Assembly: GCA_044892505.1 (NCBI GenBank)
Contig: CM097883.1
Coordinates: 404,738,422 to 404,800,000, forward strand
Length of the DNA stretch: 61,579 bases
From: Schmidtea nova
Lineage: Eukaryota
Direction of reading: 5' to 3'
Shown here: positions 16,377-49,367 of the stretch, piece by piece
Numbering within the stretch: the first letter of the stretch is position 1
How the letters are laid out: each line of letters opens with the position of its first letter
Made by a program: the position numbers and the translations under genes
The notes under the pieces: model-generated
What the model was told of the DNA's origin: nothing
Database searches by the model: none
What the model saw: the letters and a program-made list of their open reading frames with translations, nothing else

Positions 16377-16440
16377 TATTTTTTAATTGTATTTTTATTT
16401 TGATTTGATCATCCCTCACAGCTAGCGAATTGATTGCAAT
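16377..16440 (-). pseudogene. 3'-terminal remnant of another TRAF MATH exon
   Basis: Minus strand reads IAINSLAVRDDQIKIKIQLKNNI, paralogous to LHINSPAVREDQIIIKCQIKII of 14145-15421. Confidence 0.75.
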
Positions 16441-20953: not shown

Positions 20954-22704
20954 ATGACCTGTTACTCTGACATGTGGGAAATAATGGACAAACATTCCTT
21001 TCAAATGCGTTCTGATGTAATTAGTAATTTGACATGTATAATTTGTCAGAAACTTCTAATAGATGCATGGGAGGGCTCCTGTAGATGTCGGTATTGTAAG
21101 AAATGTATCGATACGTACTTAGCAAAAGGTAATCAAATGTGCCCAAAAGGTGATGAAGGGTGCTTGCCAGGGATTATCGAGCAGCAATTCTATATCAATA
21201 GAAACAACTTGGCCAATAAACAAATTTCCCAATTGGAAACTCAATGCCCATTGAATAATTGCGAATACAAATGCTCCTTACATGATATGAGTGATCACTT
21301 AAAGGTATGCGGAGGAGGGTGGGAAACACTGAGGAAATTAAAAGACAAAACTGAAAATGTGACACTTGACGAGACTTCATCCCACCTTTTGAATGCACTA
21401 CATAATCATTTGTCGACCAATAGAAAATGGATAAAGCGCGCAACTAAATATATAAATTCATGTGGTCACAGAACTCTTACATTACCCATTTCTAATCTGG
21501 ACGATCTTAAAACCTTTTCAAGCGCCAATTCATTTCTATCTGGTCAAACGATTGAAGAGGTTAAAATAAAGAACTAATTTGATATTTTATTTTCATACCC
21601 ATTTCTTCTCTAGGAAACGTTTAGTAGAGTTTTGTCGGACATGAGAACAATCAAACGCAAATCAGACGAAATTGTATCAAGAATTTACGATTCAGCCGAA
21701 AGATATTTACGTAAAGGTTTAGAGGAGAAAGAAATTCCTCTTGGAAAAGTAAATGAAGACAATGAAGAATTGGAGATTTCCATAGAAATCATTGATGAAT
21801 TTCCGGAATCTGAAGAAAACCCAAATGAGAAAGTAGACGAATACGCAAAATTGATAGAGAAACAAGCCAAATGCACAAAACGTCTCGCGAATAAAAACGA
21901 ATTAGCAGTCGCTTTAAGGTTGAAGACAGAAAAACAAGACAAAGCCATTCAGGAACTGAAAATGGAGAAGAAGAGCACTCTAAAGGAAAAGATAAGACTT
22001 GAGAAAGAGCTAAAAAACCAAAGAAAGCAGCTTTCAAAGTCGAATCAAGAGAATGAGAAATTAAAAAAAGAAATAAAAGACCTGCAACAGACAGAAAAAG
22101 GATGGCTCAAAAAATGGGTAAAGTTAATAAAAATTTCAAGTTCGCTTTTAACTAATGCTTGCATTTCCAGATGCCCATGACACCCGTAAAGGATTTTGGA
22201 AACTCATCTAACGAAAGGGTTGCCGAGAGAACTATCGGCTTATTCGTTTGTCACTTTAATAGGATTTCTCACATCAATGCAACGAGTGGTAGTGACAAGT
22301 TCTATTTCACCAACCGTTTCATAGATGTGTGGATCCGGTTATGGCCGAACGGTTGCAAATATAACAACCACCTCCAACGGGACGCGAAGCGATTGTGCTT
22401 GGACTTTCTAATTGATGACGGAATCATTCGACATGAAGAAAACGACAGGCGACACCCTCGAACGTACGAGGTGAAACTCGTGTTGAAATCAAAATTCCCT
22501 AACAGCGACAATGATAACAATAACAATAATAATAAAACTGTTTCCCAGAGTCAAAGATTTGAATTCGACGGCATCAAGAGTTATGCAAAAATATTTTCTC
22601 CCTCACAATTTCATTTCCTAAAATCCGATATTTCCGAAAATCAAATTATTGGAAACGATGACTCCTTATTGGTCGAATGCCAAATCCATTTGACCAATCA
22701 ATAG
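20954..22704 (+). CDS. TRAF-like protein, 547 aa (RING, zinc finger, acidic linker, long coiled coil, divergent MATH), 3 exons
   Basis: Exons 20954-21559, 21614-22117, 22171-22704; phase-0 GT-AG introns of 54 and 53 nt join three ORFs in frame. RING CIICQKLLIDAWEGSCRCRYCKKC...CPKGD; ZF CPLNNCEYKCSLHDMSDHLKVC; MATH-like GLFVCHF, SDKFY, IRLWPNG, GNDDSLLVECQI. Confidence 0.88.
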
Positions 22705-29290: not shown

Positions 29291-30210
29291 TTTTGTAGAT
29301 TTATTTTCTAGTGACCTGCTTAAAAGGTTTTATTTATAGCAGGTAATCCTTAAACTTTTCGCTTTCTTCTAATTTTCCTTATTTTATTAGATTTTCATAA
29401 TGAATTCTTAACCGCCATTTTTAAATTTTGTAAATAAAAATTATTAGGCAAAAACAGAACTTTTGAAAACTTGTTTAAATGAAGCGGAAACATTTACTGT
29501 TGCACCCTAAAAATAAATAAAATCCGAAAAAAAATGGCACAAAACATAACACAAGGTCATAAATTAATTTAATAAAACAAAAATATTGATAAATTTATAA
29601 AGTAAAAGTAAAATAATAAAAATTAATTTAATAAAAATAATTAAACTTAAAATACAAAAAATCGATTAAATCAGATTTTTGCAATAAAGAAAAAAAATTT
29701 CAATTCAAAAATAATATTTCATATTTAGAGCGTAAAATGAATAATTGAATAAATGTTTGTTTTAATGAGCCGCAAATCATATAAATTGTATAACGCGTCA
29801 TAAGCCGGTACATTTTGGCAGGAAGCTTTTATATTTTATGTTTATCCGGCCAACGGCAGCATGATTCTGCTGAAGTGTTTGCCGCATAAATTATTATCAA
29901 ACTGATTTATATATTCTATTATTTCTGTACATTCCCGCTGGCACTGCCCCGCTGGTCGCGATGGCCCCAATGTGATCAGCAGCCCCCCCATAAATTATGC
30001 GTAACATCTGTGCCAATGAATTGCTATAATTATAACCAAGCGCAAAATAATTATTTATCATTCAAACGTTTGGAAAAGCAACGCAAAATCTCATCACAAA
30101 TTAGCCAACAATTCAGCAGATCTCAAGCAGATTTTAATCAGATTTGCACGCGTGATAATGGGATCAATATTTATTGGGATATTTATTCACGTTTATCACA
30201 ATTTCAGCTA

Positions 30211-31190
30211 TCAATTGATTTCATTCGGGGCCACTTTGCATTTGAGGTGGACTTTATCATTGCTGACGCCAGGGGAATTCTTGGGGATTTTATTATAACC
30301 ATAATCATAAACCCAAATTGGATTATTCATGTCATGTGACGGCTTCCCCCATCCGGCATCACCAGGGCGATCTGAATATTTTACTGTTGCATGGTGACAA
30401 ATATTTCCATCTGCCGGATTGACCGCATCAATTGTGACGGCACATTTGAATGGCCATGCCAATTTATCATCGGATTCGCCACGCATCAAATGGAAACCAA
30501 CAGCAATATCACCATTATAACCATGATCATTAATAATAACTATCAAGGACATTTTATATCCGGATGACCCCGAATAAAATGGCTTGCTGTAGATCCATTT
30601 CCCTCTCCTCTGCTGTGATAAATTATCAATCCGCCATTCTAGAAATCCGAAATTTAAACCATCTTGAATTTCCAATTTTGTTTCAATCAGCCGAATTTCA
30701 TTGGCGCATTTCTCCATTTGCAGCTGAAATTGAATGCCAAATTCAAACATTTCAATAAATCAATTTCACCTTTCTATTCACTTCTTCCTGCTGTCGCTGC
30801 TGCTCATACTTTTGATTTAATTCATCCATTTTCTCCTTCAATAGCCTTATTTCTGCCGCCTGGTTCTTCTCTTTTCTTTTCATTTCTTCCATTTTCTGTT
30901 GCAATTTCTAATAATAATAATATCAATCAAATATTTCAATAAATCAATTTCACCTTTCTATCCACTTTTTCCTGCTGCCGCTCCTGCTCATACTTTTGTT
31001 TTAATTCATCCATTTGCTGTTGATGTTTTGTTTCAATCGCCTGAATCTGCTGCCGCACCTGGATTGCATTTACACATAATCAATAGCGATAATCAATAAT
31101 CACATCAGCAGGCAGATAGTGGCCACTAAACCCCCGGTATAAATGGAACGCAGCGCAATTGAACCATTTCAACCAATTTCTCAGCGCCAT
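30211..31190 (-). CDS. RING-less TRAF-like protein, 280 aa (29-aa leader, coiled coil, MATH), 4 exons
   Basis: Exons 31190-31104, 31058-30954, 30907-30770, 30723-30211; phase-0 GT-AG introns of 45, 46 and 46 nt; in-frame stop immediately before the ATG. MATH: LEWRID, YSKPFYSGSSGYKM, HLMRGESDDKLAWPFKCAVTIDAVN. Confidence 0.88.
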
Positions 31191-32329
31191 TTATTTGCAT
31201 TCCCCCTACTTATTTGTATTTTCACCCGCAAATATTCCCCTATGATAATTATAATTTGTAATTAATTGCAAAATGCCCCCAAATTAATATTGTTATTCAC
31301 CAGTTAATTGATAATTATGAAACAACTGAAACTGTTATCAATCAAGCGCACCAATTAATTAATAATATCCCCCTATTGAAGCATCCCAATGAGTAATTCT
31401 GCCCCTCCTCAATATATTTCACCATCAATTCAATTATTAATTAGAACAATTGTGAACATTTACAAACGGAATACACAGATAATCTATTCAACTTGGAATG
31501 GTCCATGGAATTATGAAAATTATTTTGATTTTTAGTTAATAATTTTGGTTTATTTACAAAATTGATGAAAGGCTGTTGTTATTATTAAAGTCATTAATTA
31601 CGCCAAATCTGGAAGGAAGCCATTCGTGTGGAAGTGCCAAATATCAGCTGCGTGCGACATATTACTAACTGCACATTCATTCATCAGTTTTATTTCTTTT
31701 TACTTGGACCCCTTTCACAATACGTCAGTCGCTTCTGGTGCAATTGATTCTCGTGATACATGTAAATAATTTCCCCTATTGAAGCATTCCCAATGAGTAA
31801 TTCCCCCCCTCCTCAATATATTTCACTATCCAATGATAATTATCGCTCTGCGATGAATATTTATCAAAATCTCCAGCTGAATTTACAATTTCCATAAATA
31901 TCAAAATTATGTTGATGAAATAAATTAGAAAATTTTAATAATTTCAGTTGGGAATAAATCTAATTTGAATGTAAATTTATCAAGTTTACGGATGATGTTG
32001 TTGGTTAATACAATAAATGGCAGGACCAAATGGTTACCTATAATCCCAATAAAGCTTAGTAAGACGCTCAACTACGCTTTACGTAACATTGTTGGTTTTC
32101 ACCCACCAACACCAACAAAACTTCCCCGATAACCGCAACAACAGAAACAGCATTTATAGTGTAAATATTGATTTTGAATTCCATTTATTTAGCCTTGCAT
32201 ATATTATTGTTATCAGTGCAAATGGAAACAAATTACAAAATGGCCGCGGGAGAATTATTATCATTTAATTAAAGTGCCACAGCGAGCTGCAGTAGAATTG
32301 TAGGGCAACACGTGATTGATAATATAAAT

Positions 32330-32595
32330 ATTTAGGCATAATTACGGGAGGCAGCAGGATATGCTGTAGCAAAAATATAAATATTTACACAGCAAATCAT
32401 ATAATTATTTACATCAGCCTTGGCCACATTCACTATATAAACCGCGTTCACAATCAAATATGCAGCCCAAATATATGCGACGTGCCGCCAGTAAATCGCG
32501 AACAGATAATAAAACGCGACAGACAGCTGCAGACCGCCGTAAACGCGCCGCAATATAACACGCATCAAATATTCACGCAAATCTGTCATTATCAA
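32330..32595 (-). CDS. Possible small hydrophobic (membrane) protein
   Basis: GC-richer ORF MTDLREYLMRVILRRVYGGLQLSVAFYYLFAIYWRHVAYIWAAYLIVNAVY; candidate 49-nt GT-AG intron after AKAD. No family recognised. Confidence 0.3.
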
Positions 32596-32726
32596 ACGGG
32601 TGAAGCGGATATTTTATTGTTTTGTTTGTTTAAATAAATGCTTTTACAATGATATTTTGTTTTAATGGTGAATATAAATTGATATTCATAAAATATCTGC
32701 CTTATTATTATAACAAATACACAAGC

Positions 32727-33553
32727 ATGGCCGACTGTATAAAATCTGATGACCTACCAACACTGATGATTCAACTCGCACTCTACGAAACATTAATTTT
32801 GCATCAATCAACTGATATTTTGGTGCTGCTCCAAACAAAATTTTGAATCTGATCTCTTTAGACGAATGTGAACATTGACCTCAATAATTCGCACATCATC
32901 GTTAAGATGGATGTTGCACATTTAAATTTAAATAATCTTACTGCAAAAATTAACATCTATTATTTCTGCTATGAAATCAGTTAAGATCCAATTTTGTAAA
33001 AAGGTTGAAATGATGAAAGAAGATGAATACCAGTCTTTTGTCATTTCAATTTCAGCCCGTGTATGGAATAATGATTTCATTGATGTTGACGAAAAAAATA
33101 ATCCAAATGAGCGAGAAGGGTTCAAATTGGAAATTAATTAAAATAGAATACATTAGCTTTGTAATAACGAAATACTCCGAAATAAGAAGATTAAGAAGCA
33201 AAAAATATCTTTCAACACCGAAATCTTTACTTAATAAGGATTGCATTATTAATGTCAATAACAACGACAATCTTTGCTTTCTTTATAGTGTGTTGGCTGT
33301 TAAAAATTTTAATGAAGTTAATGATGAAATTAGACATTTATCAACATCATATAACGTTTCATCACTTCACTTTGATATAAACGACATGCCAGTGAAGTTA
33401 AGTAACATTAGCAGATAAAATTATTATCATTATGAACCAGAATTATTTCCAGCTTTGAAATATACAAAATATAATCCAATGTGTGTCAATATTTTTGCAA
33501 GTGGTAAAATAGTCATATTAGGATTAAAAAACAAAGACTATACAAATAGTTGA
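32727..33553 (+). mobile_element. Polinton/Maverick (adintovirus-like) relic: pPolB N-terminal region plus TBP-like fragment
   Basis: KGSNWKLIKIEYI...KYLSTPKSLLNKDCIINVNNNDNLCFLYSVLA...MPVKLSNI resembles the GSGW...YIxLPxxLxxKxAIINxxNxDxxCF motif upstream of Polinton pPolB; followed by YEPELFPALKYTKYNPMCVNIFASGKIVILGLK (TBP second-repeat-like). Confidence 0.75.
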
Positions 33554-33876
33554 TAATATCAATTATAGAAGATAAAGCCTTTGTTGATTTCATACTAACA
33601 TGTGACTCATGACTGCAATATTGATGCAATGAAAATGCACGATTCTGATTGGTCGAGTGTGTATCGATAGAATAAAGACATGTTGTGCATGCTTGATTCT
33701 CATTGGTTCATAGTGTTTCATTTCGTACATGTGTGTTTCTATCGTATATATACCAAGAACACTATCATTATTTAGAATTTTAAAAAATGTGCTTAAAGGA
33801 GACAATGATTAAAAGTGGTAAGGATTTTAATTAATCTTTTTCAATTTTAATATATATTATATTTTCAGGAAAACTG

Positions 33877-34386
33877 ATGAGCGTCGTTTTAGCAAAGTTG
33901 GAAGAAATGTTCCCGAAACTAATGCCAGCCCTGGCATATACGGCACCAGAAATTTTTCCGTACAAGATCCAGCTGATGACCGGAATAGACGTGAATCAAA
34001 TCGTCTTGGACCATCTGGCAAATATCCACATCGATTTGCCCCACGTATCCGAGCATATCCTCTGCGCATATCAATGCCGAAATTGCGTTGAGAGGATCAG
34101 AAGATTCTTACGAAACACCCTAAAAGAATTCGATTCACAACTCGAAAAAGTTGAGGAGGAAGATGAGGATATGAAGGAATCGTGGCCCAATTCAACACCC
34201 GAGCCTATAGTTGATTCGACAACTTCAGAAAAATCAATGATTGTATGCGATGAATCTCCCGAATCGCCAGATTGTGACGAATGTCACAGAGTTGCTGATG
34301 ATCATCATCAAGAAAATCAATGGCATTTTACATGTTTTTTTATTATTTGTAAACAGTCATTTTTATTTAGTTTCATGTCATTTTAG
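33877..34386 (+). CDS. Intact 169-aa ORF, likely virus/Polinton-derived, with HxxC/CxxC and IxCxE motifs
   Basis: Intronless, GC-richer; HILCAYQCRNC; acidic tract EEEDED; IVCDESPESPD. Confidence 0.55.
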   Translation: MSVVLAKLEEMFPKLMPALAYTAPEIFPYKIQLMTGIDVNQIVLDHLANIHIDLPHVSEHILCAYQCRNCVERIRRFLRNTLKEFDSQLEKVEEEDEDMKESWPNSTPEPIVDSTTSEKSMIVCDESPESPDCDECHRVADDHHQENQWHFTCFFIICKQSFLFSFMSF

Positions 34387-37300
34387 GTTTTTCATTTTAA
34401 TAAATGTATTAGATTTTTTATTTGTTTTTATTTGAATTTAATTTAAGTAATTATTTTCACTTTAAGTATTAAAATTTTTATTTATTAAGTTTAAAAATAT
34501 TACTTTTAATAAATAAATTATTCTTTGCACATGGATTGCAATGTCTTTGTTTCGTTGCAACATTTGTTTCGTTGGACATTTCAGATATCCTGTCTTGTAG
34601 ATCAATGTCTACCCAATTAATTAATAAAATGTACTTTTATTTTATTTAAATTTCCGTTTTTTATTTAATCGATTTTTTTAATTGTTCTCTTAAAAAAATA
34701 ATTCAGAAAGAACTAAATTTGGAGATCAAGCTGCTCTGGGTTAATGCAAGAAATTAATCCTTCCGTTTACTCGGTATTACTGCCTGTCTCCTTATTAATT
34801 TTTGGATTAATTGTCGATATATTTTGTGACTTACAAATTATATTTTATTAATTATTTTTTTCAACCTTAGGTGAATTGCTCAGCTCAACAGTATTTCCAT
34901 CTATATTGAACATCCCTTATAATGAAATTCTATTAATGTAAAAATCAAAACCATTATTTATATGCTGAAATATATTATGTTAAAATACTATTTCACCAGT
35001 AAAAAAAGTTATAAAAAAAGTTATTATCTTTAGGGATATTTAAATTATATTTTGTTTGTTTTTATATATTTTTATAAACATTCTTTATAATTTACAATAT
35101 TTTATATATTGCCTAAATTCATAGTATATAAATAATTTCTTAATAAAAAAAATGAACAAAATCTTTTGACGTAAAGAAACTAATAATAAATATGAGGAAA
35201 TAAATATATTTATTATGGATTCGTACTCATGCAACTTCCCTTTACAAACCAGTCAAGTGTTAAAGGTTGCAATTGATTTTGCAAATGATTTTGCGTATAA
35301 AAGTATAATATCTTAAGAAGATTAAGTGATGAATCCACATAAGACACAATTGAACTATAGTGAAAAATATGTACGGAATTTTGACGAAACTGGGCTATTC
35401 TGGAAAGGTCTTCCACATCGCTCTCTAGTAAAGATAAAAGTTAAAGAAAAAGAAAGAGCCTTAAAACAAAAAGATTGATGATATCAAATGCAAATATAAT
35501 TCAAACAAAAACGCATAGCAAAAATGCTATTTTTTGTTCATATTTAAATTTCTGAAATGAACGATTTAAAGATGAAAAAAATTAATGTTCTAGCTGTTCT
35601 CGTTAATTTTTCAGGCCAAAGACAGACAATTTAAGCAATATTAAGTTTTTATTTTTATTGCCCAAAACAACATCGTTGCTGCATATTATAAAAGTAATTT
35701 TAGAATAAATTGGTATCTGATTACACTAAGACAATATAGTATTTTCCAAGCACTAGAAAATATTTCAATGTCATATTACAAAATAGCTTCTCTCACAATC
35801 ACAAACTGTTTTATGCGAAAGATCATTTTTAACTAGAAGATCTTTTAAAAATCATGTCATTGATTCATGTAAACGATGGAATTTCTATTGACGAATATAT
35901 TTATATATATATGCGATTCCCAGTAGAAAGTTAATTATTCGAATGTCCACATAATCTACCATTTATTTCAGTAACCGTAATTCCCTCCATCGTTTACTTG
36001 TGGTTGGTCAGTCTTTAAGCTCCAATAACCCTTTACTTAAGAGCGAAGAAAAGAATGAGGGTTTACCCAAAAAAGTAATATCAAAAAACTTTATTATAGT
36101 TCTAAAGTTATCTTGAGATAAAAAGAATCAGTTCTAATGCTGCTAAGTAGTAAAATTACAAAGTAAAAATACAACTGTTGGTTCAAAAAAGCAAGTTTGT
36201 TACAAGCACTAAAAGAGCAGTTAAAAGAAGAAGTACAAAAAATACAAGTTAAAAGGAAGAAGAAAGTTTTAAATCCTACAAGTGATTTTGAAAACACTAC
36301 CTAAGAAAGCAGCTGTGATAAGTCATCTAACGACTTCAGAACAGCAGAGGATTTAAATTTGGACCTGGAAATTGAGTCAGAAACAGAATGTTGACCAATA
36401 AAAAAACTCACTAAGGAAAGCTCATACCAAAGTAAAGTTTTTAAAGTTTTGTATGAACGTCTAATGGAACTGAATCTAGAATCTGTTAGAGGACTCTCTC
36501 AAGAACATTGTTTAAGTTCAGATCTCACAATATTTAGGAGAATTTGTAGAAGTTTTAAGTTTGACATTTTGGATGATAAAGAAAATGATCCCGCTTGTAT
36601 GGAGGATGTGTAACAGGTTTGTAATTTATAATAATTTACGTGATTTATAATTTTAGAACTCGGTTAGCGCTATTCTTGAAATGATATCATTGCTTAAACT
36701 TTTATATGTTTTCATGTTTTTGTATATTTGATATCTTTTACTGTTTTATCGATTTTGTGACTATAAAAAGTTCAATAGATTTTGACTTAAATCAGAGGAT
36801 AAAGACTGAGATATTTTACCGTGTATTGTTACTTTGATTGTAATGTGACAGAATAATCAGGGAATTGAAACAAGCTAATTAAATAGTCTTTCTTTAATTA
36901 GGTTTATAATTTAGTTTTTATTATATCGCGGCTTTGTGTCTAGGAGCTAAACATTAACTTATAACAATTAACAATAACAATTAACTTATTTCTTTTATTA
37001 CAAACTAATATAATAATATAATATTAATAATATAATATTACAATTTAATATAATAATACAATTTAAAAATAATAAATAATAACATTTATTATTTTTAATA
37101 TTTTTAATAATTATTATTAAGATAAGAAAAGATGAAGTGCAATAATTAAAATACACACTTGTCAAGGGTCATCCATACCACCCACATTGTTTGGGCTAAT
37201 AGTACCTAGGAATCAATAGTTCGCTATCTATAGAGATCATGCCTTAAATGTGCCTAAATTTAATATTTATTTTGCTGTTATCTGGAAACTTACTTGTCCA

Positions 37301-37642: not shown

Positions 37643-40600
37643 ATAATCAAGTTGAAAATAGAAAATGAAAGATTATTGAATGAAATCTGAGAATCGAAAG
37701 ATGTTCAATGAAATAAAATATTTTTAATAGTTTTTTAGTTTTTTTCTTATATAACATTTGGTTAAAATTTTATTAGTATAGTTGTTGTTGTGTTAAATAA
37801 AAAACATGTTAAGTAAATAATCTTTTTGAATGTATAGATACATAATTTATAGTAAAGCTATTGATGACATATATATGACTATTTAAAGATATGAAGAGGT
37901 AAAATAATTAATATCATATTTCAGACAATGTTTTTGATCTTGCGATGAAATTATTAAATATTCAAAAGCTTGAATATATGTTATGATGGATATGTTTCTT
38001 AGGATATCTTGCTTGATACTTTGTTTTTAATGTTGAAGTTTTTTTTACCATCTGACAAAATCCCCTAAATTATTATTTATATCTCAAATGAATTACTTAT
38101 AAAATTGTAATAGATATATACCAGCTTTTATTACGTTGTGGTACTTTATAAATATTTTACGTTGTGGTATTTTTATTTATCCATTTTATTTATTTTTTTT
38201 GCTCATATTTTACTATTCATTACAAAAATTTTACAGGGTACTTAACAAAATATTTGAGGATAACCAAAAATTTTTTTATTGATTTATTACAATTTTTATT
38301 ATTTGATTTCCTTATTAATAGGTGGTAGCTCCATCTCTTCTCCATTGACTATAACCTTCTTCTTTCTGTTTGCGTTTCCTTTTCTTTGCATATTTTCCTT
38401 TTCAACACCTTTTTAATTCTCAATTTATTGCTTTTTATGATATTTAGCTCCTCTTCCAATATTGCTTCTGCTTTTTGAACAGGTAGTCTTAATTGCCTCC
38501 ACCGTATGAAATTCTTGCTCGATGATCTGGATTTCAGATCACCTTTTTTCTTTCGGCTTATCCGATGTTCTACTTGTAGTTAATATTTTCCTTTTCTTAT
38601 AATCATTTAGTGAGCAACATACTCCACATCATCTTGCCATTGGCTTTCAACAGCTAAATAAATTATCCGTACTGTTTCTATGTCATCCAAGGCCGAGTGA
38701 CTTCCTTTTCTATTTATTTCTTTTTATTTCCATTTTTTTCAAATTCCCATTGACCGTCTTCTTCGTCATGACGATTTTCCCCAGGCCATTTTATTTATTT
38801 CTTTATAATTTAGTTCTTTAGGTATCCTCAACAATACTATCGATTTTCCAGGATTTTAAAAAAAGCAAGAAACATGCATTCAAAAATGTGTTTTACTTGT
38901 TATTTGATTCTAAAATAAATTGATCGCATGTCATTGTAGCATTCATGTATATTAAACAAATATTAGATAATTCAGGTTCAAATAACTATTTTCATTGGTC
39001 AGTACATGTATATTAATTGTATTTATATTATTATTATTGTTTAAGATTATTCAAAGTAAAATATACTCCTAGGTTCAAGAAAACGGAGAATGGCAAAAAT
39101 TAATAGAATTGACTGAAAATAATATAATTTGGACATTATTTAAAATCACCGGGCCGTAAAAGGATTCAGTGCCTGATTATCGGAACCTTAGTTCATTCCG
39201 TGAGTCATTACTTGATATATAAAACGCTGTTGCAGTTCACTTCGTAAAAATATACTGTTCTATCTAGTAAATTAGATTGTAAAATCTGGAACCCAAAGTT
39301 TTTTCATTATGCAATCTTTATTCGTTATTGTCAGTAAATGGATGCGACCTCGCCTCTATACAAATAGTTTGAATGTGCGATTCATCTTTATAAAAGATGA
39401 CCAGACAGATCGATAAGGGTAAACCGCGACGTTGCTGGTTTCATACACATTTCCTAATTTTAAGGAGTTATGTACGACTTTTTCGGCAGACTTCATATAA
39501 AGAATATATCCCACATAGTTGCAAAATAATACATTAAATAAAATGAATCTACCCTCAGGTATTGTAGAAAGATATTATCAACACTTTTCAATGACATCAA
39601 TGAAGCATATCATGGACATGGCAACTGAAAAAAGGTTTTTTAATTCTCCTTAGAATGGGAAAACATGATGCCAGTTCCTTTATCATCAATATCTGGTTTG
39701 TTGGGAAACAAGTGGTTTTTACAAAGATTAAAATTTGAAACCTGATTTCGTTTTCATAAAAGGCAACGATTGAGTTGTTGTTGAAAATGGTGAACACTAT
39801 CATGGAAAGCAATCTTGCCAATAGAAAATAGAAGTGTGGACGGGGGAGCAAAGGAAATAATCGATGAGTCATAACCTATCAAAATAGAATAACCATTGTT
39901 AACGCTCACACGATGAGTCATTAAAAATTATTTTAAGTGGTTCTCGCAATGTTGCTTTTTCATATTGGAGACACTGCATCTTTTGGATCTACTTTATAGC
40001 CTTGAACAGATAGATAAATGAATTTTCATTATTAATAAAGATTTTTATTAGCTTTTTTATAGGAAATTGCAATGTTTTTAATTATGCGATGAATGATTCA
40101 GATACGATAAATGATTCCGCGATGATATATTCCGCGATGAATAGAAATAATCAAATAGAAATAAGATTTTGTAAATAGAAATATTTTGATAATAATTTCA
40201 TTAAAATATATATTATATTGTAAAATATAGGAAACATAATGATACTCATAATGACACTTGTAATAAATTTTTGATAATAATAATTTTTTATAAAAGTTAA
40301 ATCAATAGCTTATAACATTATTTTGTTAAAGATAATTTTAATAGATTATAATATTAATGATTAAAGCATTTTTTATTTTATTTTTTATAACTATATAGTG
40401 TTGGGACAAAACTGCAAACTGTTTAAATTTCAGCATTTTAAATGTCATATTTATCAAGTAATTAAATTTTTTTGCTCCCATACCCTCTGACATCCGTTCA
40501 GGCCTAGTGCCAAACGGACGAAAGTAGCCTGAGCGGATCGCAGGTTCGATTTGTAATCGATCAGTCCATTTTACATAATCAAGTTGAAAATAGAAAATGA

Positions 40601-43600
40601 AAGATTATTGAATGAAATCTGAGAATCGAAAGATGTTCAATGAAATAAAATATTTTTAATAGTTTTTTAGTTTTTTTCTTATATAACATTTGGTTAAAAT
40701 TTTATTAGTATAGTTGTTGTTGTGTTAAATAAAAAACATGTTAAGTAAATAATCTTTTTGAATGTATAGATACATAATTTATAGTAAAGCTATTGATGAC
40801 ATATATATGACTATTTAAAGATATGAAGAGGTAAAATAATTAATATCATATTTCAGACAATGTTTTTGATCTTGCGATGAAATTATTAAATATTCAAAAG
40901 CTTGAATATATGTTATGATGGATATGTTTCTTAGGATATCTTGCTTGATACTTTGTTTTTAATGTTGAAGTTTTTTTACCATCTGACAAAATCCCCTAAA
41001 TTATTATTTATATCTCAAATGAATTACTTATAAAATTGTAATAGATATATACCAGCTTTTATTACGTTGTGGTACTTTATAAATATTTTACGTTGTGGTA
41101 TTTTTATTTATCCATTTTATTTATTTTTTTTGCTCATATTTTACTATTCATTACAAAAATTTTACAGGGTACTTAACAAAATATTTGAGGATAACCAAAA
41201 ATTTTTTTATTGATTTATTACAATTTTTATTATTTGATTTCCTTATTAATAGGTGGTAGCTCCATCTCTTCTCCATTGACTATAACCTTCTTCTTTCTGT
41301 TTGCGTTTCCTTTTCTTTGCATATTTTCCTTTTCAACACCTTTTTAATTCTCAATTTATTGCTTTTTATGATATTTAGCTCCTCTTCCAATATTGCTTCT
41401 GCTTTTTGAACAGGTAGTCTTAATTGCCTCCACCGTATGAAATTCTTGCTCGATGATCTGGATTTCAGATCACCTTTTTTCTTTCGGCTTATCCGATGTT
41501 CTACTTGTAGTTAATATTTTCCTTTTCTTATAATCATTTAGTGAGCAACATACTCCACATCATCTTGCCATTGGCTTTCAACAGCTAAATAAATTATCCG
41601 TACTGTTTCTATGTCATCCAAGGCCGAGTGACTTCCTTTTCTATTTATTTCTTTTTATTTCCATTTTTTTCAAATTCCCATTGACCGTCTTCTTCGTCAT
41701 GACGATTTTCCCCAGGCCATTTTATTTATTTCTTTATAATTTAGTTCTTTAGGTATCCTCAACAATACTATCGATTTTCCAGGATTTTAAAAAAAGCAAG
41801 AAACATGCATTCAAAAATGTGTTTTACTTGTTATTTGATTCTAAAATAAATTGATCGCATGTCATTGTAGCATTCATGTATATTAAACAAATATTAGATA
41901 ATTCAGGTTCAAATAACTATTTTCATTGGTCAGTACATGTATATTAATTGTATTTATATTATTATTATTGTTTAAGATTATTCAAAGTAAAATATACTCC
42001 TAGGTTCAAGAAAACGGAGAATGGCAAAAATTAATAGAATTGACTGAAAATAATATAATTTGGACATTATTTAAAATCACCGGGCCGTAAAAGGATTCAG
42101 TGCCTGATTATCGGAACCTTAGTTCATTCCGTGAGTCATTACTTGATATATAAAACGCTGTTGCAGTTCACTTCGTAAAAATATACTGTTCTATCTAGTA
42201 AATTAGATTGTAAAATCTGGAACCCAAAGTTTTTTCATTATGCAATCTTTATTCGTTATTGTCAGTAAATGGATGCGACCTCGCCTCTATACAAATAGTT
42301 TGAATGTGCGATTCATCTTTATAAAAGATGACCAGACAGATCGATAAGGGTAAACCGCGACGTTGCTGGTTTCATACACATTTCCTAATTTTAAGGAGTT
42401 ATGTACGACTTTTTCGGCAGACTTCATATAAAGAATATATCCCACATAGTTGCAAAATAATACATTAAATAAAATGAATCTACCCTCAGGTATTGTAGAA
42501 AGATATTATCAACACTTTTCAATGACATCAATGAAGCATATCATGGACATGGCAACTGAAAAAAGGTTTTTTAATTCTCCTTAGAATGGGAAAACATGAT
42601 GCCAGTTCCTTTATCATCAATATCTGGTTTGTTGGGAAACAAGTGGTTTTTACAAAGATTAAAATTTGAAACCTGATTTCGTTTTCATAAAAGGCAACGA
42701 TTGAGTTGTTGTTGAAAATGGTGAACACTATCATGGAAAGCAATCTTGCCAATAGAAAATAGAAGTGTGGACGGGGGAGCAAAGGAAATAATCGATGAGT
42801 CATAACCTATCAAAATAGAATAACCATTGTTAACGCTCACACGATGAGTCATTAAAAATTATTTTAAGTGGTTCTCGCAATGTTGCTTTTTCATATTGGA
42901 GACACTGCATCTTTTGGATCTACTTTATAGCCTTGAACAGATAGATAAATGAATTTTCATTATTAATAAAGATTTTTATTAGCTTTTTTATAGGAAATTG
43001 CAATGTTTTTAATTATGCGATGAATGATTCAGATACGATAAATGATTCCGCGATGATATATTCCGCGATGAATAGAAATAATCAAATAGAAATAAGATTT
43101 TGTAAATAGAAATATTTTGATAATAATTTCATTAAAATATATATTATATTGTAAAATATAGGAAACATAATGATACTCATAATGACACTTGTAATAAATT
43201 TTTGATAATAATAATTTTTTATAAAAGTTAAATCAATAGCTTATAACATTATTTTGTTAAAGATAATTTTAATAGATTATAATATTAATGATTAAAGCAT
43301 TTTTTATTTTATTTTTTATAACTATATAGTGTTGGGACAAAACTGCAAACTGTTTAAATTTCAGCATTTTAAATGTCATATTTATCAAGTAATTAAATTT
43401 TTTTGCTCCCATACCCTCTGACATCCGTTCAGGCCTAGTGCCAAACGGACGAAAGTAGCCTGAGCGGATCGCAGGTTCGATTTGTAATCGATCAGTCCAT
43501 TTTACATAATCAAGTTGAAAATAGAAAATGAAAGATTATTGAATGAAATCTGAGAATCGAAAGATGTTCAATGAAATAAAATATTTTTAATAGTTTTTTA

Positions 43601-46600
43601 GTTTTTTTCTTATATAACATTTGGTTAAAATTTTATTAGTATAGTTGTTGTTGTGTTAAATAAAAAACATGTTAAGTAAATAATCTTTTTGAATGTATAG
43701 ATACATAATTTATAGTAAAGCTATTGATGACATATATATGACTATTTAAAGATATGAAGAGGTAAAATAATTAATATCATATTTCAGACAATGTTTTTGA
43801 TCTTGCGATGAAATTATTAAATATTCAAAAGCTTGAATATATGTTATGATGGATATGTTTCTTAGGATATCTTGCTTGATACTTTGTTTTTAATGTTGAA
43901 GTTTTTTTTACCATCTGACAAAATCCCCTAAATTATTATTTATATCTCAAATGAATTACTTATAAAATTGTAATAGATATATACCAGCTTTTATTACGTT
44001 GTGGTACTTTATAAATATTTTACGTTGTGGTATTTTTATTTATCCATTTTATTTATTTTTTTTGCTCATATTTTACTATTCATTACAAAAATTTTACAGG
44101 GTACTTAACAAAATATTTGAGGATAACCAAAAATTTTTTTATTGATTTATTACAATTTTTATTATTTGATTTCCTTATTAATAGGTGGTAGCTCCATCTC
44201 TTCTCCATTGACTATAACCTTCTTCTTTCTGTTTGCGTTTCCTTTTCTTTGCATATTTTCCTTTTCAACACCTTTTTAATTCTCAATTTATTGCTTTTTA
44301 TGATATTTAGCTCCTCTTCCAATATTGCTTCTGCTTTTTGAACAGGTAGTCTTAATTGCCTCCACCGTATGAAATTCTTGCTCGATGATCTGGATTTCAG
44401 ATCACCTTTTTTCTTTCGGCTTATCCGATGTTCTACTTGTAGTTAATATTTTCCTTTTCTTATAATCATTTAGTGAGCAACATACTCCACATCATCTTGC
44501 CATTGGCTTTCAACAGCTAAATAAATTATCCGTACTGTTTCTATGTCATCCAAGGCCGAGTGACTTCCTTTTCTATTTATTTCTTTTTATTTCCATTTTT
44601 TTCAAATTCCCATTGACCGTCTTCTTCGTCATGACGATTTTCCCCAGGCCATTTTATTTATTTCTTTATAATTTAGTTCTTTAGGTATCCTCAACAATAC
44701 TATCGATTTTCCAGGATTTTAAAAAAAGCAAGAAACATGCATTCAAAAATGTGTTTTACTTGTTATTTGATTCTAAAATAAATTGATCGCATGTCATTGT
44801 AGCATTCATGTATATTAAACAAATATTAGATAATTCAGGTTCAAATAACTATTTTCATTGGTCAGTACATGTATATTAATTGTATTTATATTATTATTAT
44901 TGTTTAAGATTATTCAAAGTAAAATATACTCCTAGGTTCAAGAAAACGGAGAATGGCAAAAATTAATAGAATTGACTGAAAATAATATAATTTGGACATT
45001 ATTTAAAATCACCGGGCCGTAAAAGGATTCAGTGCCTGATTATCGGAACCTTAGTTCATTCCGTGAGTCATTACTTGATATATAAAACGCTGTTGCAGTT
45101 CACTTCGTAAAAATATACTGTTCTATCTAGTAAATTAGATTGTAAAATCTGGAACCCAAAGTTTTTTCATTATGCAATCTTTATTCGTTATTGTCAGTAA
45201 ATGGATGCGACCTCGCCTCTATACAAATAGTTTGAATGTGCGATTCATCTTTATAAAAGATGACCAGACAGATCGATAAGGGTAAACCGCGACGTTGCTG
45301 GTTTCATACACATTTCCTAATTTTAAGGAGTTATGTACGACTTTTTCGGCAGACTTCATATAAAGAATATATCCCACATAGTTGCAAAATAATACATTAA
45401 ATAAAATGAATCTACCCTCAGGTATTGTAGAAAGATATTATCAACACTTTTCAATGACATCAATGAAGCATATCATGGACATGGCAACTGAAAAAAGGTT
45501 TTTTAATTCTCCTTAGAATGGGAAAACATGATGCCAGTTCCTTTATCATCAATATCTGGTTTGTTGGGAAACAAGTGGTTTTTACAAAGATTAAAATTTG
45601 AAACCTGATTTCGTTTTCATAAAAGGCAACGATTGAGTTGTTGTTGAAAATGGTGAACACTATCATGGAAAGCAATCTTGCCAATAGAAAATAGAAGTGT
45701 GGACGGGGGAGCAAAGGAAATAATCGATGAGTCATAACCTATCAAAATAGAATAACCATTGTTAACGCTCACACGATGAGTCATTAAAAATTATTTTAAG
45801 TGGTTCTCGCAATGTTGCTTTTTCATATTGGAGACACTGCATCTTTTGGATCTACTTTATAGCCTTGAACAGATAGATAAATGAATTTTCATTATTAATA
45901 AAGATTTTTATTAGCTTTTTTATAGGAAATTGCAATGTTTTTAATTATGCGATGAATGATTCAGATACGATAAATGATTCCGCGATGATATATTCCGCGA
46001 TGAATAGAAATAATCAAATAGAAATAAGATTTTGTAAATAGAAATATTTTGATAATAATTTCATTAAAATATATATTATATTGTAAAATATAGGAAACAT
46101 AATGATACTCATAATGACACTTGTAATAAATTTTTGATAATAATAATTTTTTATAAAAGTTAAATCAATAGCTTATAACATTATTTTGTTAAAGATAATT
46201 TTAATAGATTATAATATTAATGATTAAAGCATTTTTTATTTTATTTTTTATAACTATATAGTGTTGGGACAAAACTGCAAACTGTTTAAATTTCAGCATT
46301 TTAAATGTCATATTTATCAAGTAATTAAATTTTTTTGCTCCCATACCCTCTGACATCCGTTCAGGCCTAGTGCCAAACGGACGAAAGTAGCCTGAGCGGA
46401 TCGCAGGTTCGATTTGTAATCGATCAGTCCATTTTACATAATCAAGTTGAAAATAGAAAATGAAAGATTATTGAATGAAATCTGAGAATCGAAAGATGTT
46501 CAATGAAATAAAATATTTTTAATAGTTTTTTAGTTTTTTTCTTATATAACATTTGGTTAAAATTTTATTAGTATAGTTGTTGTTGTGTTAAATAAAAAAC

Positions 46601-49367
46601 ATGTTAAGTAAATAATCTTTTTGAATGTATAGATACATAATTTATAGTAAAGCTATTGATGACATATATATGACTATTTAAAGATATGAAGAGGTAAAAT
46701 AATTAATATCATATTTCAGACAATGTTTTTGATCTTGCGATGAAATTATTAAATATTCAAAAGCTTGAATATATGTTATGATGGATATGTTTCTTAGGAT
46801 ATCTTGCTTGATACTTTGTTTTTAATGTTGAAGTTTTTTTTACCATCTGACAAAATCCCCTAAATTATTATTTATATCTCAAATGAATTACTTATAAAAT
46901 TGTAATAGATATATACCAGCTTTTATTACGTTGTGGTACTTTATAAATATTTTACGTTGTGGTATTTTTATTTATCCATTTTATTTATTTTTTTTGCTCA
47001 TATTTTACTATTCATTACAAAAATTTTACAGGGTACTTAACAAAATATTTGAGGATAACCAAAAATTTTTTTATTGATTTATTACAATTTTTATTATTTG
47101 ATTTCCTTATTAATAGGTGGTAGCTCCATCTCTTCTCCATTGACTATAACCTTCTTCTTTCTGTTTGCGTTTCCTTTTCTTTGCATATTTTCCTTTTCAA
47201 CACCTTTTTAATTCTCAATTTATTGCTTTTTATGATATTTAGCTCCTCTTCCAATATTGCTTCTGCTTTTTGAACAGGTAGTCTTAATTGCCTCCACCGT
47301 ATGAAATTCTTGCTCGATGATCTGGATTTCAGATCACCTTTTTTCTTTCGGCTTATCCGATGTTCTACTTGTAGTTAATATTTTCCTTTTCTTATAATCA
47401 TTTAGTGAGCAACATACTCCACATCATCTTGCCATTGGCTTTCAACAGCTAAATAAATTATCCGTACTGTTTCTATGTCATCCAAGGCCGAGTGACTTCC
47501 TTTTCTATTTATTTCTTTTTATTTCCATTTTTTTCAAATTCCCATTGACCGTCTTCTTCGTCATGACGATTTTCCCCAGGCCATTTTATTTATTTCTTTA
47601 TAATTTAGTTCTTTAGGTATCCTCAACAATACTATCGATTTTCCAGGATTTTAAAAAAAGCAAGAAACATGCATTCAAAAATGTGTTTTACTTGTTATTT
47701 GATTCTAAAATAAATTGATCGCATGTCATTGTAGCATTCATGTATATTAAACAAATATTAGATAATTCAGGTTCAAATAACTATTTTCATTGGTCAGTAC
47801 ATGTATATTAATTGTATTTATATTATTATTATTGTTTAAGATTATTCAAAGTAAAATATACTCCTAGGTTCAAGAAAACGGAGAATGGCAAAAATTAATA
47901 GAATTGACTGAAAATAATATAATTTGGACATTATTTAAAATCACCGGGCCGTAAAAGGATTCAGTGCCTGATTATCGGAACCTTAGTTCATTCCGTGAGT
48001 CATTACTTGATATATAAAACGCTGTTGCAGTTCACTTCGTAAAAATATACTGTTCTATCTAGTAAATTAGATTGTAAAATCTGGAACCCAAAGTTTTTTC
48101 ATTATGCAATCTTTATTCGTTATTGTCAGTAAATGGATGCGACCTCGCCTCTATACAAATAGTTTGAATGTGCGATTCATCTTTATAAAAGATGACCAGA
48201 CAGATCGATAAGGGTAAACCGCGACGTTGCTGGTTTCATACACATTTCCTAATTTTAAGGAGTTATGTACGACTTTTTCGGCAGACTTCATATAAAGAAT
48301 ATATCCCACATAGTTGCAAAATAATACATTAAATAAAATGAATCTACCCTCAGGTATTGTAGAAAGATATTATCAACACTTTTCAATGACATCAATGAAG
48401 CATATCATGGACATGGCAACTGAAAAAAGGTTTTTTAATTCTCCTTAGAATGGGAAAACATGATGCCAGTTCCTTTATCATCAATATCTGGTTTGTTGGG
48501 AAACAAGTGGTTTTTACAAAGATTAAAATTTGAAACCTGATTTCGTTTTCATAAAAGGCAACGATTGAGTTGTTGTTGAAAATGGTGAACACTATCATGG
48601 AAAGCAATCTTGCCAATAGAAAATAGAAGTGTGGACGGGGGAGCAAAGGAAATAATCGATGAGTCATAACCTATCAAAATAGAATAACCATTGTTAACGC
48701 TCACACGATGAGTCATTAAAAATTATTTTAAGTGGTTCTCGCAATGTTGCTTTTTCATATTGGAGACACTGCATCTTTTGGATCTACTTTATAGCCTTGA
48801 ACAGATAGATAAATGAATTTTCATTATTAATAAAGATTTTTATTAGCTTTTTTATAGGAAATTGCAATGTTTTTAATTATGCGATGAATGATTCAGATAC
48901 GATAAATGATTCCGCGATGATATATTCCGCGATGAATAGAAATAATCAAATAGAAATAAGATTTTGTAAATAGAAATATTTTGATAATAATTTCATTAAA
49001 ATATATATTATATTGTAAAATATAGGAAACATAATGATACTCATAATGACACTTGTAATAAATTTTTGATAATAATAATTTTTTATAAAAGTTAAATCAA
49101 TAGCTTATAACATTATTTTGTTAAAGATAATTTTAATAGATTATAATATTAATGATTAAAGCATTTTTTATTTTATTTTTTATAACTATATAGTGTTGGG
49201 ACAAAACTGCAAACTGTTTAAATTTCAGCATTTTAAATGTCATATTTATCAAGTAATTAAATTTTTTTGCTCCCATACCCTCTGACATCCGTTCAGGCCT
49301 AGTGCCAAACGGACGAAAGTAGCCTGAGCGGATCGCAGGTTCGATTTGTAATCGATCAGTCCATTTT
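37643..49367. repeat. Four head-to-tail copies of a ~2932-bp unit
   Basis: Units start at 37643, 40575, 43506 and 46438; only difference noticed is a 7-T versus 8-T run in copy 2; unit is a mosaic of decayed TE fragments. Confidence 0.97.

Follow-up and report, generated by a model that had tools for sequence, protein, structure and literature searches.

All members of the TRAF1-6 set except TRAF1 carry a RING domain. A TRAF2 protein from which it has been deleted is dominant-negative and acts without catalysis. TRAF1 itself behaves as a RING-less adaptor or modulator (PMC7586133). In flatworms, the TRAF/MATH family is greatly enlarged in Schmidtea mediterranea (Swapna et al. 2018, PMC6109357), and many of its transcripts there are devoid of RING and zinc fingers (Ziman et al. 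2020, PMC7586133).

The gene studied here lies on the minus strand of a 61,579-nt stretch of DNA from Schmidtea nova (contig CM097883.1), which is referred to throughout as the window. A first-pass annotation had singled it out as a RING-less TRAF whose N-terminus looks like a mitochondrial presequence. The reading that we favor, with moderate confidence, is that of a young, amplified, 5'-truncated RING-less paralog of a lineage-expanded TRAF family, which would act as a cytosolic modulator or dominant-negative adaptor.

Results

Structure of the gene

Four exons between positions 31190 and 30211 join, by predicted splicing, into an uninterrupted open reading frame (ORF) of 843 nt that encodes 280 aa (Table 1). 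The product starts with a 29-aa N-terminus; a coiled-coil-like region, encoded by a pair of exons that arose by tandem duplication, and a TRAF-C/MATH domain follow. The three introns measure 45, 46 and 46 nt, and all are bounded by GT and AG. An in-frame TAA stands immediately 5' of the ATG of exon 1, and the AG at 31060-31059 is the sole acceptor between exon 2 and the in-frame TGA upstream of it. Exon 2 with intron 2 and the 3' half of exon 3 with intron 3 are 92% identical over 92 nt (30927-31018 versus 30743-30834), a stretch that takes in the start of the intron, and lie in tandem.

Table 1. Features of the studied gene, of its repeated unit and of the neighboring TRAF paralogs (positions in the window)
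Feature	Position	Strand	Description
TRAF paralog A	5485-6587	+	with RING exon
TRAF paralog B	15421-14145	-	with RING exon
TRAF paralog C	20954-22704	+	with RING exon
Apparent repeated unit	29579-31270		holds the whole gene; from contig depth and a back-joint
Two AATAAA hexamers	30187-30182, 30175-30170	-	24-41 nt past the stop
Exon 4	30211-30723	-	end of TRAF-N helix and TRAF-C/MATH (about 30235-30699); TGA 30213-30211
Intron 3	30724-30769	-	46 nt, GT..AG
Exon 3	30770-30907	-	second coiled-coil-like unit
Intron 2	30908-30953	-	46 nt, GT..AG
Exon 2	30954-31058	-	coiled-coil-like unit VRQQIQAIETKHQQQMDELKQKYEQERQQEKVDRK; family homology starts at first codon
Intron 1	31059-31103	-	45 nt, GT..AG; size matches introns 2 and 3
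Exon 1	31104-31190	-	ATG, 29 codons, MALRN...LPAD, donor GAT/GTGATT; non-homologous, presequence-like N-terminus
TATA-like TTATAATTAT	31245-31254	-	55-64 nt 5' of ATG, at edge of repeated unit

Both AATAAA hexamers are likely poly(A) signals, and the TATA-like TTATAATTAT is a weak candidate for a promoter element because the genome is AT-rich. The GC content of the window is 22-37% in 2-kb steps. Exon 1 has 48%, more than the sequence upstream of it (29%) and intron 1 (31%). This GC island and the typical length of intron 1 would both favor exon 1 as a real exon, and, since real exons are GC-richer here, some constraint on exon 1 is conceivable.

The TRAF domain

Database searches and the fold model were based on the exon-wise sequences of the 280-aa product. 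Exon 4 matched the Pfam family TRAF-mep_MATH (PF21355) at 1.2e-16 and 61.6 bits (cut-off 27.4), and PF22486 at 6.9e-14. Its best solved relatives in the PDB were the TRAF domains of TRAF3 (5.7e-13, exon residues 9-163), and the neighbors of the MATH exon in the ESM Atlas were TRAF/MATH clusters. An AF2 model built from 13 family sequences (pLDDT 79, pTM 0.74) shows a single helix followed by a beta-sandwich; when this model was compared with the PDB by Foldseek, the top 48 matches were all TRAF domains of TRAF1-6, with TM values of about 0.55-0.60. Pfam, the TRAF3 match, AF2 and Foldseek thus agree on the eight-stranded TRAF-C/MATH beta-sandwich of the TRAF family, and all conserved MATH motifs are present in the gene. 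The first-pass annotation, which had called an intact spliced MATH gene, is confirmed in this respect by the uninterrupted ORF, the three GT-AG introns and these domain and fold matches.

The helix of the model (exon 4 residues 2-20) lies directly before the sandwich and aligns to the coil of TRAF3. Exons 2 and 3 are rich in Q, E, K and R, and their best heptad register has hydrophobic residues at only 40% of the a/d positions. The SSSF of TRAF3, whose three serines contact the PxQE-type ligand, is aligned to DAGW in the studied gene as well as in the family consensus. The ligand rules of mammalian TRAFs are therefore not transferable, and neither the specificity nor a decoy role of the product can be read from them.

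Absence of RING and zinc finger

The whole window was searched by tblastn with the RING/zinc-finger exons of the three paralogs, and in six frames with a loosened RING regular expression. Neither search found a RING or zinc finger within the gene or farther upstream along the same strand, in agreement with the earlier claim that both are missing, and the only RING matches in the window belong to the paralogs at 5.5, 15 and 21 kb. With a single Cys in exon 1, the product starts without the N-terminal RING and TRAF-type zinc finger of the TRAF family. A RING exon located far upstream is unlikely because introns in this family are only tens of bases long; those of paralog B, which is spliced into a 361-aa RING-zf-CC-MATH protein, measure 46, 57 and 88 nt.

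Several features of the paralogs were observed along the way. Paralogs A and B share 92-96% protein identity in the RING/zinc-finger exon. Paralog A has a frameshift near 5766, and its MATH exon is broken again (a stop follows ...GYKMCLDFAVF, and the sequence continues in a different frame). Probably paralog A is a pseudogene, unless the assembly is in error there. Within the MATH exon, 78 nt (HLM.GESDDKLAWPFK.AVTIDAVN; 30417-30494 in the studied gene, 6379-6456 in paralog A) are 95% identical between these two, whereas the remainder of their domains is unalignable as DNA; gene conversion, or unusual constraint on this segment, could account for it. With paralog B the identity is 85% over 101 nt. 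A remnant of a MATH C-terminus at 16381-16440 (minus strand; 65% identity to paralog B over 20 aa) appears to be a downstream-like fragment of another TRAF copy.

Relatives and the boundary of homology

When the MATH exon was the query of an exhaustive profile search, 1,716 relatives were retrieved. A word-based protein search with the MATH exon alone gave no match, a blank that carries little weight because the exhaustive search then found relatives within range. The closest single-MATH relatives are 45-58% identical, and those looked up are all UniParc or MetaClust singletons. Full-length relatives (P0010, P0029, P0034, P0042 and P0060) have the layout RING-zf-CC-MATH; their N-terminus, MxxxxWKxMKENKF, is common to paralogs A and B of the window, and their coiled coil carries the unit (I/V)RQQIxxIETKSQxQIDELKQ. 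In an exact look-up in public assemblies, neither the 179-aa ORF nor relative P0024 was on record.

When the 280-aa model is aligned locally to P0016, P0029 and P0032, each alignment starts at residue 30, which the first codon of exon 2 encodes; there VRQQIQAIETK in the model faces VRQQIGMIERK. This start falls 86 residues into P0016 and 253 residues into P0029. Exon 1 bears no significant resemblance to the N-termini of the family, whether compared as protein (p 0.26-1.0 against shuffles) or as DNA (p about 0.5). Since homology begins only at exon 2 and exon 1 is unlike the family, the gene is best described as a 5'-truncated family member with an unrelated first exon. A hint from MAFFT that exon 1 might be a frameshifted remnant of the family MSENVWKIMKENKF N-terminus was rejected, as the Smith-Waterman scores were no better than those of shuffles.

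Among the nearest 34 single-MATH relatives, a RING was recognized by regular expression in seven and a degenerate RING in two, and about 25 had none. RING-less members are therefore ordinary in this family, and some of them may be partial gene models. Several of the RING-less relatives (P0024, P0066 and P0032) begin with other N-termini, unrelated or truncated. No protein with the N-terminus encoded by exon 1 was found in the public protein collections searched.

Copy number and the repeated unit

Four public runs (X1-X4, from one study, kind unrecorded) match 45-51% of sampled words and were mapped to 29300-35200. Intergenic sequence is covered by their contigs at a depth of about 7-26 and free of mismatches, and none of them in this interval contains an intron-skipping joint at any of the three predicted introns. 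Because the intergenic coverage is even and joints are missing from the predicted introns, we read these runs as DNA. The summed contig depth over 29891-31269 is 140-940 and exceeds the flanks 10- to 40-fold. If the runs are DNA, this suggests roughly 10-40 copy-equivalents at no less than 90% identity, a reading that is suggestive and unproven because depth is no copy number.

The block of raised depth includes exon 1 and ends 64-80 nt 5' of the ATG, at joints 31254, 31267 and 31271. A back-joint from 31254 to 29579 with a 20-nt filler, seen in three of the four runs, indicates that elsewhere units of about 1.7 kb stand head to tail. A search around the unit for transposon termini yielded no terminal repeats, inverted or direct, that were convincing. 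Other copies have joints that drop a coiled-coil exon and, in all four runs, a 200-nt deletion in MATH (30489 to 30690). A 196-nt contig of run X1 stops exactly at 31104, the final base of exon 1, which may reflect copies that diverge from the intron onward.

Further repeats were noted nearby. Upstream of the gene, a 66-nt motif, CCCCTATTGAAGCAT.CCCAATGAGTAATTC..CCCCTCCTCAATATATTTCAC, occurs at 31361-31426 and again at 31765-31830 with 91% identity, each copy beginning with a plus-strand ATG (MSNS.PPQYIS). A joint from 31271 to 31765 in three runs suggests that this motif directly adjoins the repeated unit in other copies; a promoter element, a divergent first exon and a repeat end are candidate roles for it. 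The segments 33437-33830 and 34422-34618 have a summed depth of 25,000-190,000, versus about 20 in single-copy flanks, and represent a very high-copy repeat. At 39597-48667 on the minus strand, an identical 91-aa ORF (MTHRLFPLLPRPHF...) occurs four times at a spacing of 2,932 nt, in a long tandem repeat of perfect copies.

A rival reading is that the gene is not expressed as modeled. The locus might be one of many decaying copies of an amplified TRAF fragment, in effect a pseudogene, or its mRNA might start otherwise, for example through transcription or trans-splicing of an SL onto the acceptor of exon 2; translation would then begin at Met45 (MDELKQ...), and the exon 1 peptide would never be made. 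We consider this rather unlikely but still a substantial alternative. The search of public runs gave no RNA run that matches the stretch, and X1-X4 hold no splice joints. The codon-usage score of exon 1, 0.06 bits per codon, reaches only the 63rd percentile when set against random ATG-open windows. Deletions in other copies, the 200-nt gap among them, the frameshifts of the neighboring paralog A, the blank of the protein collections for the exon 1 N-terminus and the short sequence (about 64-80 nt) that the repeated unit retains 5' of the ATG point the same way. Against it stand an ORF that remains uninterrupted over four exons, the full set of conserved MATH motifs with a confidently predicted fold, canonical splice sites with a first intron only one nucleotide shorter than the others, the AATAAA hexamers past the stop, and a GC island in exon 1 like that of the other exons.

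The first exon as a possible presequence

Exon 1 encodes MALRNWLKWFNCAAFHLYRGFSGHYLPAD, in which R4, K8 and R19 are the basic residues, no D or E occurs before D29, and R19-G-F-S22 is present. The peptide, its three basic residues, the acid-free stretch before position 29 and the RGFS motif are thus as the first-pass annotation had described them. Residues 1-28 have a charge of +3, and the helical moment over 18 residues (4-21) is 0.585, with R4, K8, N11, N5, C12 and H16 on one face. There are also two phi-x-x-phi-phi motifs, LRNWL and WLKWF, and, in the window copy, an R-3 type MPP site, RGF/S. Judged by simple descriptors only, exon 1 resembles MPP-cleaved matrix presequences in being a short, basic, acid-free N-terminus that is predicted to be capable of forming an amphipathic helix.

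Such a peptide could be a working presequence, or an amphipathic helix that binds mitochondria, with MPP cutting after F21 and the RING-less trimer delivered to or into the organelle. We give this very little chance. In its favor are the features just listed and the retention of exon 1 in the amplified unit, together with their combined rarity. The 428 ATG-open 29-mers of the window provide a chance baseline, for criteria picked after the peptide had been seen, in a genome-wide scan that covers thousands of N-termini: 14% have at least three K/R and no D/E, 1.2% have R-x-[FYL]-[SA] in addition, and 0.5% (two of the 428, one being exon 1) also reach a moment of 0.585. The charge pattern is common, since 14% of the 29-mers have it; the full combination is uncommon but post hoc, and its rarity (0.5%) leaves some room for a targeting function.

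Other observations weigh against a presequence. In every contig of X1-X4, position 31126 has T in place of C, which changes Ser22 to Asn (RGFN); the motif is therefore polymorphic, although an R-2 reading, RG/F, would survive the change. Conservation among relatives, as expected of presequences, is lacking: all of the 34 nearest ones have acidic residues in their N-termini, and none is similar to exon 1. Two Trp, three Phe and no Ser precede the site, a composition atypical for presequences, and exon 1 is joined to a cytosolic signaling domain without known matrix function. A literature search found no TRAF with a targeting sequence or presequence of its own, and the known links between TRAFs and mitochondria consist of recruitment to outer-membrane adaptors like MAVS (titles of PDB 4z8m and 4ghu), not of import. 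Published design rules for presequences (TargetMITO, PMC13684279) are no classifier. Moreover, random amphiphilic peptides are able to target mitochondria (Lemire et al. 1989, as listed in PMC4585086), so that a resemblance to presequences is in itself no sign of evolved function. The presequence look of exon 1 is probably incidental and most likely reflects the recent recruitment of a peptide that happens to be basic and hydrophobic; mitochondrial import of the product is unsupported.

Discussion

A plausible history of the gene starts from an ancestor with the order RING, TRAF zinc finger, coiled coil and MATH. A partial duplication or deletion would have taken away the RING, zinc-finger and first coiled-coil exons, and an unrelated first exon of 87 nt, which brings an ATG of its own, would have become spliced, through a 45-nt intron, to the ancestral phase-0 coiled-coil acceptor. 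The coiled-coil exon would afterwards have doubled in tandem. The resulting 280-aa product would keep the TRAF domain only; by analogy with known TRAFs, it could trimerize with itself, mix with RING-bearing paralogs, or take their receptor or adaptor docking sites. It would have no ubiquitin-ligase activity and may serve in the cytosol as a modulator or a dominant-negative adaptor. Its most likely role, on the same analogy, is that of a non-catalytic adaptor that acts as a homo- or heterotrimer with RING-bearing paralogs or as a competitor for their docking partners.

The closest parallels are mammalian TRAF1 and RING-deleted TRAF2, which combine a TRAF-N coiled coil with a TRAF-C/MATH domain in the absence of a RING, as the studied gene does with its TRAF-N-like coil. 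The AF2 model matches TRAF-domain structures of TRAF1 (5e1t and 5h10), and action through trimers or heterotrimers instead of catalysis would be expected of the studied protein as of these two. The parallel has its bounds, however. The gene is no ortholog of TRAF1; it appears to have lost its RING independently and recently, within a lineage-specific expansion, and the best sequence match of its domain is TRAF3, not TRAF1. TRAF1 keeps a zinc finger, whereas the studied protein has none, and the ligands of the two probably differ, given DAGW in place of the SSSF of TRAF3.

A further likeness is to the planarian TRAF-like/MATH expansion. The nearest relatives have the RING N-terminus seen in the window paralogs, and they share the MATH motifs and a coiled-coil unit, IETKSQQQIDELKQ, as well; members without RING and zinc fingers are common both in the published set and among the relatives examined here. 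The studied gene differs from that expansion in two ways: no database member has its exon 1, and amplification appears to have given it tens of copies that are nearly identical.

The interpretation offered by the first-pass annotation, a mitochondria-targeted or decoy TRAF, therefore survives in one half only. A scaffold or decoy role of the RING-less product is plausible by analogy, as it fits the TRAF1-like architecture. This reading is reasonable but ordinary for the family, in which most of the nearest relatives are RING-less, as are many members described in planarians (PMC7586133). The mitochondrial half rested on composition, is shared by no relative, and is weakened by the S22N change.

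A bolder scenario, an amplified RING-less TRAF family whose de novo first exon serves as a mitochondrial targeting helix and places catalytically dead trimers on or in mitochondria, is likewise very improbable. If it were true, dead TRAF trimers might be decoys at a MAVS-like platform, or cell-death regulators, in a regenerating flatworm. Only if exon 1 is expressed and directs mitochondrial localization would the gene provide a notable case, in which an adaptor of immunity or cell death gained an organelle-targeting signal de novo.

If the ordinary reading is right, namely that of a truncated and amplified cytosolic paralog, the gene would be a clean example of how a fast-expanding adaptor family makes RING-less modulators, by a route of 5' truncation, acquisition of an unrelated first exon, tandem duplication of a coiled-coil exon and amplification of the whole unit. 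It would also help the annotation of TRAF/MATH genes, of which this genome has a very large repertoire, and would caution that recruited N-termini should not be taken for targeting signals. The main value of the locus lies in showing, by example, how such RING-less paralogs arise.
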